Positions 55,903 to 61,770 of a stretch of DNA of 64,000 nt are shown here, in pieces. A program made the translations under genes and the position numbers. The notes under the pieces were generated by a model. The model made no database searches. It saw only the letters and a program-made list of their open reading frames with translations, and had not been told where the DNA came from. The DNA is taken from assembly GCA_964270895.1 (NCBI GenBank), contig OZ185435.1. The stretch is one strand, 5' to 3'. Within the stretch, counting starts at the first letter, position 1. The number at the start of each line of letters is the position of its first letter. The stretch is from Podarcis filfolensis. Its lineage: Eukaryota.

Positions 55903-56181
55903 CAGTTACCGTTAAGGTTGCTTTGCTGCTTACGCTGCCATACTTATTGGAAGCTTTGCAGCTGTATTCGCCACAGTCAACTACTTGCGGTCTCGGGATT
56001 TGAAGAGTGGATGTATAATTAGTGGTGTGTATGGTATACTTGTCGCCATCATAGATTTCCCGACCGGCTCTGTACCATTGAAACCGTACGTCTGGCGCCA
56101 TCTCGATCTCGCAGGTGAACTTGGCAAGGTGGTTCACAGCAACTTCTTGGGATTCCAGCCTTCTCCTCAGTATGGGTCCAA
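55903..56181 (-). CDS. TTN: Ig I27 exon (exon 50 equivalent)
   Basis: AG..GTAAG, 279 nt; VGPILRRRLESQEVAVNHLAKFTCEI. Confidence 0.95.
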
Positions 56182-57080
56182 CTGAAGTTAAAAGTCAAAG
56201 AATAATGTGGTTACAACCATCCACGTTCATGTGGATATTGTAATACTAATAGCATGTATGGTGCTTATAAGTGTACATTCCAAAACACTGTTAATAAAGT
56301 GACCAACAGAAATGAGATGTGTGGTTTCATGAGCTATCCAAGGAAAGTGGCTGTAAAGAAAAATGGTTGTCAGAGGTGAAAGCAAACCGAAAGCAGTGCC
56401 CAGTCTACCAGAGGGCTACATACACTGCAGTGCATAATGGAACTCTGAAGATACTCTGATGTGCTACTTACTATTAAAGGCATGCAAACAACATGATATA
56501 TGAAATTATACCAGGTTGTACCAGAACATTTTCAACATGAAATGTGTGACATTATGCTAGAATGGTGCAATGACTTCTACAACGTGCTGTGCAATCTCTT
56601 GGCACGTCTACTCAGAAGCAAGTCTCACTGTGCTCAGTGGGGCTTCCTCCCTAGTAAGCGTGTTCAGAATTGCATCTTTATTGTAGCAATGAAAAGGAAA
56701 AGTGAACCAAGTTGCTCTGTGGATATGGGGATGAAAGTGCTCCTAAGACATGCACTCTTTTAAAAAAATCTGAAATTACAAATAGTTTTATTTAACAATC
56801 ATCATTCATGAAACAAAAGTTGATTTTGTTTCAGTACCAAAAAGTGCAAAATGCAAATAAAAGGTGTGAATAAGAAATATATTTAAAGAAATAAAAGTTC
56901 TAAAGAGGAAACAAAAAGTGGAGGATCTGTGATTAGTTTGGTGATGCACAGCTGAAGTTTATATACTTCTTATATCTGTATCCAAAATGCTACTAGAGAT
57001 ACAAATATGTATATGTGTGTTCTATTCAGTTAGCAAATGAGTGAAAATAGGAAAGCAATATTTTATCCCCATATTCCAAC

Positions 57081-60000
57081 CTCTTTTTACAACTGTGAGT
57101 TTCGCTGTTGCTGTTGTTTTTCCACCTTCATTCAGAGCCTCACAGGTGTACTCTCCTTGATGCACTTCCTTGAATGCTTGGTTGATTACTAGTGTGTATG
57201 TGTCATGGTCTTGCAAGCACTTGAACTCATTTCCTGAAGATACCAGCTTATCCCCAAAATACCAATTCACCACTTTAACATTTTCTATAATGGAAGTAAG
57301 ACTTACGCTGTCACCTTCTTCAACAACAGTGTCTATAAAACTTTGGCGCATGATGGGACAACCCCTGCTCACTAGACTGTCTTCTCGTTTGCTAGCCTTA
57401 ACTACATGTGCCTCCTCTTCATTTTCCTCAAAAAGTTCTTCCTTTCTCTCTTTCACTTTTAGAGCATCTATTAACCTCTCAACTGGGGCTGCTGCTACTG
57501 GAATATCAAGCGTGAGTGTGGTTGTACCTACATCTTTAATGTGCTCACTTAGAGCAGTAGTTTGGACTTCTTGAATAGACACAAGTTGCTCCTCCTGTAT
57601 TTCTGATTCAGTACCCAGGTAAGCATGTTGTAGCTCAGGTGAACCAATAATATTACTGACAGATTGTTGCTGAACAGGTGTCTCAGTTACAGTAGCAGAC
57701 TGCATTAGTTTGGAAGGTGAACAAGAAGCAAGCAACTTGTCGTGTTTAGGTTCTGCTATGGCACTGGGTTCCTCTGCTGTCAGAACATGTTTCTCGTCAT
57801 AAATAATGGAGTGAACAGCAGCTTGCAATTCGCTTTTGAAATCAGCTGTCTGAGAATATATTCCATCTAGAGAAAGAGTTATTTCTGCAGTATTGGAACT
57901 TTCCAAGATTATAAGGCAAGTGCATGTTGCATGTTGAGGTTCTTTGATCACTGTTACAGTCTTTAACTGAACGCTCTCAATATCATCGAAAGCATCCAAT
58001 GGAAATAAGTGCTGTTCATTTGTCAGAGCTACTTTCAGGGCCCTTCTGATCTGAGCCTTCATATCTAAGCTACAACATACTGGAGTCTCAGCTGCAAGTT
58101 CTTCTTCTTTCCGAAGCACTTTGTTTTCCCATGTTTCAGGCACATCCATAAGAAGCCCCAGTTGCTTTTGGGCCTTTACGTTCTCAGCATCTGGCCTTGC
58201 GATCTTGTCCAAGTGCTCTTCCTTTAATGGCTGTTTTTCCTCCAGTAACAACGGGAGCCTGACTGACTGACCTTCTTGGATGCGGGCTGCAAATTCTTGC
58301 TCTGTGGCTTCCAAGAGATCGATGCTCTCTATCGGAACACCTTGCTCCTCAACGCAGGTGGATTCTGAAGGCAACCTGGGCTCAGACACCACCTCACAAC
58401 TCATGGCCTGAACAGCCTCAAATGGCTCAGCATGTCCAACATCCAAGACCCTCTCTTCAGTCACATCAGATACCTGCATCACTGTTTGAAAGTCTTCCTT
58501 CCTCAGGGTAGCTTTCTGCTCTTTTCCTATTTCGGGGAGGATTTCCTCTTTGGGCAGAAGCATCTCCTCAGCCACAGTGGTCAGACACTTACGAAGCTGA
58601 GGCTCTGCTATAGCCACAGGGTATTCTCCGGCAATGCCACTCTGAAAGGCCTCTAAGGCCTCGGCAGCTATCTGGTTTTTTTCCTCAGATGCCACAGCAC
58701 GTTTGAGCATTATTTCAGCTTTCTGCAAAGCATTTTGGGGTTCGGGTTCTTGTACAGCCATGATGCCTTCCTTAGGCAACACTTGCTCAGTTTGGCTCGT
58801 TTGGAGATGCAACACAGAAATGGGCTCCTGGGTGACCTGAATGCTAACTGCCTCTGCCAGAGGAGGAAACTGCTTAGCATCTTCACAAGAGGTGGAGACT
58901 TGTTCTTCTGTTACTAAGCAGTGTAGCAAACATGGGCTTTTCCTAGACAGCGCCTCATCTTCCAGGGGCACCTCAGAACTAAAATGCTCTTCTCTAGGAA
59001 GCGAGTCTTGTCCATGTACAACAGGCAAATGCAGTGGCTTTTCACCCTCTCTTTGGATTTCTGCTACCACCGTGCAGTCTAACCTGGGAAGGTCCTCAGT
59101 GTGTTCATCAAAGAGCTGCTGCTTTTCTTCAGCAACCAGAGCTGTTTGGACAAGCCAGTCCTGCTCCAGAGAGCCCTTCTGCTGCTCTGCAATGGTTGCA
59201 TCAAAGGCGGACTCTTTGGGGAACATCTGTTCAGAGGCAATCGTAGCCACATGTAATACATTGGATGATTCTTGGGTATGACTAACTTCTGCAGGTGAAT
59301 CAGCATAATCGATTGCCTCAGCATGAGCTTCACTTATTTTGCATTGTTCTGCTGCTACAGCAGACTGAAAAAAGCTGCCTCGTTCTTTAGCTGGTGTGAT
59401 ATTCTCCCACTTGTGTGTGTGGTCTGCCAAAGAACTTTCCTTGGACAATTCTTGGATGCCCTCAATTCTAGGAACACATACTGCATGTTTAGGCTCACTG
59501 GTTTCAATAACTTCCTCAGCTCCTGGGACTGAGAATACAACAGACTCACCGGGGCTTACCACATATTTCTCCTCAGACAGAATGGAGGCAAACTGAGATG
59601 TTTGCTCTATAGCTGACGTTGGCCTGACCATTTCTGGAAGCTTGGTTTGCAGCCCCTTTTCTTTGTCTTCTTGGTTTATTTCCTCCACAACAGGTAAATA
59701 GAGGTCAGAAACTTGGTGGCACCAGGAACCCGGCAATTCGACTACTGGTGGGCTTTGAATTGGTTCAGAGTGTTGCTCTAGGAAACCGGGGTGCTCCTTC
59801 ACCTCACCTGTGGTAAAAGCTGAAGAAGCCACCTTTTCATTGGCCTGAGATGATGGATCTGCAATTTCTCCAACTTTGTGAGACTCAAGCAAGGCTACTT
59901 GCTGGGTCAGAAGGGCTTCCTGCTGTACAGTAGCTGTTGAATAGGAAGTCACCTGCAAAACATCTACCTCTTCACTATGTAGTGAATGCCTATCTTCAGT

Positions 60001-60944
60001 TCCAATTGTATACATCACATGCTGCCCATCATGCCTATCATCACCAGGCAGTTTAACGGCATATATCCGTGAGACGGTAGCCTCGTCACTTACAGTTTCT
60101 TTATATGACTTGGTGCGTGTTTTCTGTTTACTCTTCTGTTCCTTATATGGAGCCTCCCCAGGCACGTCTAAGAGAACAAGAAGTTCTGCACTGCTAGAGG
60201 CTTCACCTATGAGGTTGATTCCCTTACAGATGTATAAGCCACCATTGGCCCCCTGGCAGTTATTCACCATTAGTGACCCAGAACCATCTTGATTATGAAT
60301 GATAGTGTATTGTGCACAGGAGAAAATCTGGTTGTTTCCCCTAAACCACTGAATCTCTGGAGGTGGGTACCCAGCCACTTTGTACTCAAACACAGCAGGA
60401 GCACCTTGTGCACACTGAACAGGGTCTAGCTTCCTAACAAAATATGGAGGTCGTGGACTTCCTGTCTTCTCTGCAGTGAATTCTGCCTCCAGTTCCCTTT
60501 CCTCTCCCTTAGGATTGACCTTCAGATAAGCAGAGCAGGCTGTCTCTCCATGGATATTACTAGCAATGCAAGTATATTCCCCTTCATGGTCAAATTTTGT
60601 GGAGAGAATAATGAGGCTATAGTTTTCATCATCAAACACAAACTTATAGTCTGCAGATGATGTCAGCTTAACACTATTGAAATACCATTGTATCTGTGGT
60701 TTTGGATCCCCAGTAACTACAACAGAAAGTCTAGCCAAATCTCCTAAACTTATTTCAACATTTGACACATGCTTGAGGAAGGTTGGGACATTGCTCTTCT
60801 CCCTTTTCACCTCTAAACTGCTAGAATAAACTGGATTTTCAGGCATGAGTTCAAGTGTTTTATCTCTATCACATAATTGTAGGCCGCTGGTGTAACTCTC
60901 AGTTCTTTCTTCCTCAGAAGACACAATAATAGAGCTAGAAATCT
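57081..60944 (-). CDS. TTN: N2B exon (human exon 49 equivalent): I24, I25, N2B unique sequence, I26
   Basis: Acceptor ttttttccccatacag at 60945-60960; donor GTTGG at 57080; 3864 nt, phase 1/1; lies in the 1300-aa ORF; ends KTTATAKLTVVKR. Confidence 0.95.
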
Positions 60945-61139
60945 CTGTATGGGGAAAAAATTATTTACATTTTACTAAAGTGCTTTCTTGAAAAATTCAT
61001 CTTGTATCTACCAGATACTATCACTCAATTATCATGTTAGGACAACACTTCGTAATGCTGCAAGATGATTAAAACATTCATATATTTTAAAATATACCTT
61101 GAATCAAAGGGTGGACATTATTTTAGGATTCAGTTTATA

Positions 61140-61387
61140 CAGTGGTACCTCAGAAGTTGAACGTAATCCATTCCAGAAGGATATTCAACTTCCGAAACGT
61201 TCAATTTCCAAGGCACGGCGTCTGATTGGCTCTTGCAATCAGAAGAGCCAATCGGAAGCCACTTGTCTGTCACATCGGACGTTAGGCTTCCGAAAAACAT
61301 TCGCAACCCAGTACACTTTTCAGGTTTGCGGCGTTTGGGAGTCGATTTGTTTGGGAACCAAGCCATTCAAGTACCAAGGTACCAATG
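61140..61387. mobile_element. Tc1/mariner (Tigger-like) MITE, 248 bp
   Basis: TA|cagtggtacctc ... caaggtaccaatg|TA; internal inverted repeat ctgattggctctt / aagagccaatcgg. Confidence 0.82.
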
Positions 61388-61544
61388 TACTGACAATTTC
61401 CCATTTAATCAGTGCATGAATATTGGGGAATATCTGCATATAAACTGAAGGCATAATACATCTCAGATATATGGGTTGGTGTTTAATATGTATAGGCAGA
61501 CTCAGATGTTCACTTTTCCATTAGTACTAAAAAAGCAAAATCAC

Positions 61545-61770
61545 AGCTCCCATCATTCTAGAACATTAGCCATTGTGGCTGGGACTGATGGGAATTGAAA
61601 TCTAGCAAAGTCTGGAGGGCCACAAGTTCCCCATCAAGGGCAGTCTTCCCTCTCCTGCTATTCTATAGGTGTTTTGGACTACAATTTCCATCTGCTCCAA
61701 CCAGTATGGCTGTCGGTCAGGGATGATGGGAGCTGAGAGCCTCAGACATCTGGAGGATACCAGGCTGAGG
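61545..61770. mobile_element. Degenerate palindromic MITE copies (ggactacaa..cccat family)
   Basis: ctcccatcatt..gatgggaattg..tctggagggccacaagttccccat and ggactacaatttccatc..gatgatgggag..catctggagga; boundaries approximate. Confidence 0.55.

Follow-up and report, generated by a model that had tools for sequence, protein, structure and literature searches.

The window analysed here is a stretch of 64,000 nucleotides (nt) of Podarcis filfolensis DNA (contig OZ185435.1 of assembly GCA_964270895.1), and its minus strand carries an exon that we identify below as the N2B exon of titin. The unique sequence of N2B (N2B-us) is heart-specific; it is one of three spring elements behind the passive stiffness of heart muscle, and a phosphorylation and signalling hub studied in heart failure. 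Models of it assume a random coil devoid of repeats, and published accounts term it unique, random-coil or intrinsically disordered (PMC8553726, a review of N2B and N2A; PMC11530556; PMC12198301 and PMC12241362, comparative studies of connectin from 2025; PMC8971355, on cysteine conservation). An earlier note on the same DNA, made by a model from the letters and a list of their open reading frames, had proposed that the lizard N2B-us hides a diverged repeat of 74 residues. We report that this repeat is real, that it consists of nine units, and that the one folded domain known in human N2B-us appears to be a copy of it.

The titin N2B exon of Podarcis filfolensis

One long open reading frame (ORF) of 1300 amino acids, to which all residue numbers refer, runs on the minus strand from 60924 to 57022. 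Pfam places I-set immunoglobulin (Ig) domains at residues 47–136, about 160–250 and 1190–1278, and no Pfam family matches the ~930 non-Ig residues between the second and the third. Used alone as a query, this unique sequence retrieves titin-like or titin a-like proteins of Leptodactylus, Rhinoraja, Scleropages and Castor (E 1e-89 to 1e-45). On the strength of this domain layout and these named orthologues, the exon is assigned to titin as its N2B exon, in agreement with the identification offered in the earlier note.

Contigs assembled from RNA libraries of two related lizard species align without gaps over 57081–60946, with 2–3% mismatches and zero insertions or deletions, and extend at both ends into spliced sequence. 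Their loose end on the 3′ side matches window 56152–56181 exactly, so that 57081 is spliced to 56181; the splice dinucleotides of the exon are canonical (AG acceptor, GT donor). Contig coverage and splice junctions therefore establish an exon of 3866 nt that is expressed and uninterrupted. The intron that separates it from the next exon, which ends at 56181, measures 899 nt (56182–57080). The 1300-residue ORF overruns both splice sites (57022–57080 and 60947–60960): neither its last ~20 residues, which follow ...KLTVVKR, nor those upstream of 60946 belong to the protein, being read from intron.

Nine tandem units of about 74 residues

Autocorrelation of the protein sequence with BLOSUM62 scores peaks at lag 74 (z = 8.7 over residues 260–1190; z = 9.4 over residues 440–1120), with harmonics at lags 148, 221/222 and 296, and the highest z reached at any lag by 500 composition-preserving shuffles is 4.6. 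Residues 260–440 show no lag-74 signal by autocorrelation. The array occupies residues 439–1104 (window 57613–59610, minus strand) and is made up of nine tandem units of 74, 74, 74, 74, 76, 72, 74, 74 and 74 residues. Each unit contains an anchor, the second residue of a motif h-h-x-x-E-[EKQR], and the nine anchors fall at residues 452, 526, 600, 674, 748, 824, 896, 970 and 1044, in steps of 74, 74, 74, 74, 76, 72, 74 and 74 residues. All of the anchors listed in the earlier note (59569, 59347, 59125, 58903, 58681, 58453, 58237, 58015 and 57793) lie where it put them; the array that it delimited as 57760–59590 stands as well, with corrected bounds, as that interval truncates unit 9.

Each unit can also be recognised from the other eight. 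In leave-one-out tests with hidden Markov models (HMMs), 9/9 units outscored all 300 of their own shuffles (9.4–30.9 bits; z 5.2–18.9), units 1–5 scoring highest and unit 9 being marginal. An HMM of all nine units gave zero matches against five-fold shuffled sequences, and a six-frame scan of the window with the unit profile found the nine units only, plus a weak match at residues 299–349 of the N2B exon. Autocorrelation, comparison with shuffles and leave-one-out HMMs thus all agree, and the cryptic repeat is real and robust. The paralogous units are only ~15–25% identical to one another. Recent expansion at the DNA level is rejected: Tandem Repeats Finder, run on 57000–61000, reports no period of 222, and the array is therefore old. 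The features of the exon are as follows.

57081..60946, minus strand: titin N2B exon, orthologue of the mammalian N2B exon; 3866 nt, with the layout Ig-Ig-unique sequence-Ig
59611..60171, minus strand: N-terminal non-repetitive part of the unique sequence (residues 252–438); length varies between species
59878–60030, minus strand: possible extra unit (residues 299–349); weak match to the stacked-unit HMM, 10 bits, independent E-value 0.027
59389..59610, minus strand: unit 1 (residues 439–512); leave-one-out 23.2 bits, z 15.6; anchor aligns with amphibian, fish and skate
59167..59388, minus strand: unit 2 (residues 513–586); leave-one-out 30.9 bits; anchor conserved, weakest positional orthology
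58945..59166, minus strand: unit 3 (residues 587–660); leave-one-out 30.8 bits; top cross-species match is skate unit 3, score 169
58723..58944, minus strand: unit 4 (residues 661–734); leave-one-out 22.9 bits; positional orthologue in all groups
58495..58722, minus strand: unit 5 (residues 735–810, 76 residues); leave-one-out 28.9 bits; length of 76 common to squamates, fishes and skate
58279..58494, minus strand: unit 6 (residues 811–882, 72 residues); leave-one-out 11.8 bits, z 6.2; length of 72 common across groups
58057..58278, minus strand: unit 7 (residues 883–956); leave-one-out 15.4 bits; anchor LxLEEKQ kept from skate to mammals
57835..58056, minus strand: unit 8 (residues 957–1030); most conserved unit, core of the folded domain; leave-one-out 11.8 bits, z 8.9
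57613..57834, minus strand: unit 9 (residues 1031–1104); most degenerate unit; leave-one-out 9.4 bits against a shuffle maximum of 7.6
57772..58080, minus strand: predicted alpha-beta3-alpha mini-domain (residues 949–1051), made of the end of unit 7, unit 8 and the anchor helix of unit 9
57358..57612, minus strand: C-terminal non-repetitive tail (residues 1105–1189); 45–113 residues across species

Weak matches to the unit HMM upstream of unit 1 also occur in Phrynosoma (P0064, residues 301–346) and skate (P0008, residues 349–409); judged by their position and profile scores, these upstream matches may be remnants of one or two more N-terminal units. Unit-HMM scans of the C-terminal tail gave no significant match.

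To describe what the units share, we stacked 133 of them, from 18 sequences, into one profile. The first part of the consensus carries E13 and E14 (67%), [KQ]15, L/I/V18 (88%), E/D21 and L/I/F26 (87%); the second carries E39 (78%), P40 (56%) and L55-P56-K57-E58 (E58 92%), with further preferred positions at L/F61, P66 and A71. The constrained motifs are EE(K/Q)..L..E, EP and LPKE, and the two-half motif drawn from the nine lizard units in the earlier note agrees with this larger profile. When the profile is cut into two halves of 37 columns, half A and half B align over their whole length (hhalign score 14.6, P = 2.5e-5; best score among 30 column shuffles, 8.7), and odd multiples of 37 are weakly raised in the autocorrelation (z 3.4–4.3). 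The 74-residue module thus probably itself arose by duplication of ~37 residues, a step for which these profile data offer moderate support. By composition, each unit holds 12–19% D+E and 4–8% P. In charge-hydropathy space units 1–7 lie on the folded side, near the boundary; hydrophobicity is clearly higher in units 8 and 9.

The array is shared by jawed vertebrates

Searched with the unique sequence, a set of 1.8 billion representative proteins yielded 34 relatives, mostly assembly-derived translations of single exons, 850–1300 residues long. By identity and named members they group into squamates (including Phrynosoma), two amphibians (one of them Leptodactylus), nine ray-finned fishes (including Coregonus and Scleropages, with Salmo as an additional named match that is a fragment), the skate Rhinoraja, mammals (including Castor) and two further sauropsid-like forms. 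Lag 74 is the first or nearly the first lag in most orthologues, and for the unique sequence alone its z is 6.1 in frog, 6.0 in whitefish and 3.6 in skate.

In a multiple alignment all nine anchors correspond one-to-one in squamates, amphibians, the nine ray-finned fishes and skate. Pairwise scoring of single units leads to the same correspondence: lizard units 1 and 3–8 each match best the skate unit of the same rank, and units 1 and 3–9 do so against whitefish. Unit 2 is ambiguous in pairwise scoring, and the shortened unit 9 of skate fell outside it. As this unit-for-unit orthology includes skate, the nine-unit array is older than the split between cartilaginous and bony vertebrates. Comparison of these sequences indicates that the last shared ancestor of jawed vertebrates already carried the array, each unit of which has been passed down since.

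One orthologue is unusual in composition: P0010, an assembly-derived protein of 997 residues, is rich in Ala, Arg and Gly and strongly diverged, and the unit HMM detects seven units in it. In the alignment it has residues at all nine unit positions, and it looks like a copy from a GC-rich region.

Unit length and register are conserved

The earlier note had inferred strict conservation of length despite divergence of sequence from the lizard units alone, and the same is seen between species. Unit lengths of 74, 74, 74, 74, 76, 72, 74 and 73/74 are common to lizards, most ray-finned fishes and skate, so that even the 76/72 irregularity is kept from lizard to skate. Of 14 full-length orthologues from non-mammals, 13 have 435–444 residues in units 3–8 taken together; the other, P0010, has 421, and a short sauropsid form (the P0006 cluster) has 373. 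Lizard and skate are 35% identical over units 3–8, with 2 gaps totalling 2 residues in 442; identity falls to 27% over the 144 residues of the adjacent non-repeat part, where 7 gaps take up 42 residues. For lizard and whitefish the corresponding values are 34% identity and 1 one-residue gap over 443 residues of units 3–8, and 38% identity and 6 gaps totalling 50 residues over 141 residues of the adjacent part.

On average over 61 pairs drawn from different groups, 100 aligned residues contain 0.69 gap openings in units 3–8 and 0.24 in the third Ig domain, compared with 7.0 in the N-terminal flank and 9.6 in the tail. The flank measures 124–187 residues in non-mammals and 2–29 in mammals and the short sauropsid form; the tail is the variable segment of 45–113 residues listed above. 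Overall, these flanking parts of the unique sequence differ about twofold in length. Such a low density of insertions and deletions (indels), together with ~35% identity over 450 million years, speaks for constraint beyond that expected of a generic disordered spring. The profile of conservation across species is itself periodic, with an autocorrelation of 0.29 at lag 74 and 0.25 at lag 148 (99th percentile of the shuffle maximum, 0.16); the constrained positions are therefore the same within each unit.

Mammals and a sauropsid form have shortened arrays

In the two aligned mammals, beaver and P0019, unit 1 is missing, unit 2 is down to 26 residues, about half of unit 3 and 57–61 residues of unit 4 remain, and units 6 and 9 contain deletions. 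The N-terminal non-repeat part is almost absent from them as well, and six further mammalian orthologues have only four or five recognisable units. The deletions in mammals cut across unit borders. Taken by themselves, mammalian unique sequences give a lag-74 z of 2.8, below the 95% family-wise threshold of 3.4–3.6. The repeat has been overlooked, we suggest, because the most-studied animals are mammals, in which units 1–4 are deleted or eroded and the period is not significant.

The sauropsid form of the P0006 cluster (P0006/P0038) starts at unit 4. Its deletion boundaries are unlike those of mammals, so the shortening looks independent in the two lineages. In all, the N-terminal half of N2B-us is shorter by ~300–410 residues in mammals (P0051, P0019, P0068–P0073) and in P0006/P0038; if P0006 is avian, this would be a convergent shortening of the cardiac spring in endotherms.

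The folded domain of N2B-us corresponds to one unit

Human N2B-us, 572 residues long, contains a single stable domain of 115 residues (354–468), found by AlphaFold2 and magnetic tweezers (PMC11530556). This domain, N2B-us-S, has three strands between two helical regions, unfolds near 5 pN, conceals LIM-binding peptides for FHL2, and is conserved to zebrafish (supplementary Fig. S19 of PMC11530556). The same study predicts 24 FHL2 sites in human N2B-us, distributed as beta-strand peptides of ~5 residues (PMC11530556).

We modelled lizard residues 430–1190 with AlphaFold2 from an alignment of 24 orthologues. The mean predicted local distance difference test score (pLDDT) is 43 and most of the model is of low confidence. 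A single region reaches pLDDT 62–83, with a helix at 952–969, strands at 986–994, 998–1006 and 1012–1020, and a helix at 1026–1051. A compact fold of the N2B-us-S type, with two helical regions around three strands, is thus predicted for unit 8 plus the helix of unit 9; in the model, the C-terminal helix of this mini-domain is formed by the first ~21 residues of unit 9, and helices span 8/9 of the unit boundaries. In the beaver orthologue the unique sequence begins at about residue 280 and is about 565 residues long, and unit 8 falls at N2B-us 361–434. If human and beaver are collinear, which we assume, the human domain begins a few residues before the end of unit 7, takes in the whole of unit 8 and ends ~34 residues into unit 9.

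Several comparisons relate this folded module to the rest of the array. Firstly, a profile of unit-8 orthologues aligns with a profile of all other units without gaps and in register (hhalign probability 94.8%, E 4.9e-8). Secondly, in the model of unit 8 the turn between beta1 and beta2 coincides with consensus positions E39-P40, and beta3 starts at E58. Thirdly, hydrophobic residues tend to recur at matching positions in unit 8 and in the remaining units, with a correlation of r = 0.40 in register and 0.34 at the best circular shift. Profile similarity thus indicates that the folded module is homologous to the other units. Descent from an Ig domain is rejected: compared with Ig1, Ig2 and Ig3 by hhalign, neither the unit stack nor the unit-8 domain exceeds a probability of 0.4%, and the positive control, Ig1 against Ig3, reaches 99.6%.

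Searches for relatives of known structure were negative. A sequence search of solved structures gave no match at E ≤ 1, and an ESM Atlas look-up of the mini-domain returned unrelated clusters below threshold only. A fold search of the long model against 48,161 PDB representatives yielded generic long-helix matches only (Z ≤ 5.1), a result that is uninformative for the mini-domain.

A probable segmented spring built from homologous modules

These findings show that N2B-us is an ancient array of nine homologous modules of ~74 residues, the folded one among them, with conserved unit lengths and periodic constraint; in our judgement it is probable that this array acts as a segmented spring with probable docking sites. 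Each module comprises a helix-prone acidic segment laid over the unit boundary, [SA]-h-x-x-E-E-[KQ]-x-x-[LI]-x-x-E-H-x-x-x-[LIF], then a stretch of alternating hydrophobic residues, and the proline turn motifs E-P (39–40) and L-P-K-E (55–58). In module 8 these elements are predicted to pack with the helix of the next module into the alpha-beta3-alpha domain. How the modules that do not fold work we infer from this design: they may be labile or largely unfolded copies of it, whose helices and beta-prone peptides, held at fixed spacing, would segment the spring. The modules would probably also present regularly spaced predicted docking sites to partners such as the LIM domains of FHL1/FHL2.

Several observations weigh against this proposal. 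The evidence for the half-repeat is only moderate, and the correlation in hydrophobicity between unit 8 and the other units is modest. Units 1–7 and 9 mostly have pLDDT <50 in the long AlphaFold2 model. Unit 4 with its next helix, modelled from 87 sequences of units 1–6 (units 7–9 were excluded for independence from the known domain), shows no strands and a predicted template modelling score (pTM) of 0.24. Folding of modules other than 8 is thus without computational support, a negative from AlphaFold2 being weak evidence in itself. Older single-molecule data fit a random-coil model. When the 115-residue domain is deleted, human N2B-us loses its only stepwise unfolding signal (PMC11530556). 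Of the earlier note's suggestion of serial weakly folded modules, then, the part that holds is unit 8, which with the next helix corresponds to a folded domain; the serial part is not borne out by the model of unit 4 or by the single unfolding step of the human protein.

A stronger version of the modular spring, which we regard as unlikely, is that every module of the non-mammalian array folds into an alpha-beta3-alpha mini-domain and unfolds singly at a few pN, mammals having kept one. The scarcity of indels in units 3–8 at ~35% identity over 450 million years is typical of folded domains; conserved positions run throughout each unit, beyond two or three short motifs; EP and LPKE coincide with turns of the unit-8 fold; and units 1–7 are on the folded side of the charge-hydropathy boundary, though close to it. 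Mammals, moreover, are the sole group with experiments, and they carry deletions within units 3, 4, 6 and 9. Against this, AlphaFold2 folds neither unit 4 nor any unit but 8, units 8 (and 9) are clearly more hydrophobic than 1–7, and units 5 and 7, which are full-length in human, show no steps once the known domain is deleted (PMC11530556). Extended to evolution, this version would give most jawed vertebrates, in place of a random-coil entropic spring, a chain of nine labile mini-domains whose serial unfolding at piconewton forces exposes periodic docking sites for LIM proteins, which mammals and one sauropsid lineage independently trimmed to one stable module; we consider this history equally doubtful. 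If it were true, trimming would shorten and stiffen the cardiac spring.

Less plausible still is that the repeat is a relic: duplications built the spring, and selection now acts only on total contour length and on the folded module 8 while the motifs decay. The low identity of the paralogous units (~15–25%) fits such decay, as do the poor conservation and variable length of units 1, 2 and 9, and the hearts of mammals and of one sauropsid lineage still work after the deletion of several units. A relic is hard to reconcile, however, with a conservation profile in which the same unit positions are the most conserved across species (autocorrelation 0.29 at lag 74; 99th percentile of shuffles, 0.16). 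Selection on length alone would allow compensating indels, yet single unit lengths, including 76/72, are kept from skate to lizard, and the density of indels is about ten times below that of the flanking unique sequence at similar identity.

The idea that glutamate-rich low complexity simply yields EE at near-regular spacing is rejected and merits almost no credence: the region is acidic (12–19% D+E per unit) and EE dipeptides are frequent, yet no shuffle exceeds z 4.6 against the observed 8.7–9.4, shuffled databases give no HMM matches, leave-one-out detection succeeds, and frog (z 6.1), whitefish (z 6.0) and many further orthologues each show the 74-residue period on their own.

We favour the segmented spring of homologous modules over these alternatives. 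The nine-module array itself, with a register kept for 450 million years, bears on how N2B-us is studied. Nine modules supply coordinates, as unit and position, for phosphosites, cysteines, sites for FHL, alphaB-crystallin and kinases, and disease variants. The origin of the recently found folded domain is explained, as one copy of the repeat. A prediction follows: non-mammalian N2B-us may give several unfolding steps or periodic binding of partners.

Other features near the exon

Two plus-strand ORFs of 134–146 residues, 58841–59281 and 57170–57574, lie antisense to the N2B exon and are without support; most likely they reflect a coding strand whose composition leaves few stops. In the upstream intron, between 61137 and 61700, three pieces (~61137–61214, 61275–61392 and 61564–61633) match many unrelated RNA contigs of high depth. 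Reads at these pieces are loose-ended on both sides, the pattern expected for an interspersed repeat.

Comparison with known systems

The earlier note knew of no description of this repeat, and a search of full-text literature likewise yields none of an internal repeat in N2B-us, within a coverage that is thin for subscription journals, the original sequence papers of 1995–2002 among them. Other repeats are known in muscle proteins. The PEVK segment of titin, with its ~28-residue PPAK and poly-E repeats (PMC6469411), likewise consists of diverged tandem repeats in the I-band spring. The N2B array differs in its period, which is 74 (or a weaker 37) and not ~28, and in a composition that is not dominated by P, E, V and K. 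PEVK spans many small exons and varies between species in copy number and length, whereas the N2B array lies in one exon of 3.9 kb and has kept its copy number and length fixed over 450 million years. Membership in the PEVK/PPAK class is accordingly rejected on period (74) and on composition per unit (P 4–8%, D+E 12–19%).

The Z-repeats of titin, ~45 residues long and alpha-actinin-binding, are likewise short, diverged, helix-forming titin repeats outside the Ig class that offer serial docking; location, period and motif all differ from those of the N2B array. In a 7736-residue N-terminal fragment of whitefish titin, whose coverage of the Z-repeats is unchecked, the unit HMM found nothing beyond N2B-us. 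The simple repeats of nebulin, ~35 residues nested in super-repeats, resemble the N2B array in setting a module of ~35–37 residues within a longer repeat of fixed length. Nebulin is a different protein, its SDxxYK signature is missing from the N2B unit consensus, and the resemblance is formal only.

The closest comparison is with human N2B-us-S itself. It is the same region of the protein, and at the orthologous position the lizard model has the same layout of a helix, three strands and a helix. Neither PMC11530556 nor its supplement describes a repeat, and that study treats N2B-us-S as a single domain in disordered sequence; in the lizard, by contrast, the predicted domain is one copy of a nine-fold repeat.

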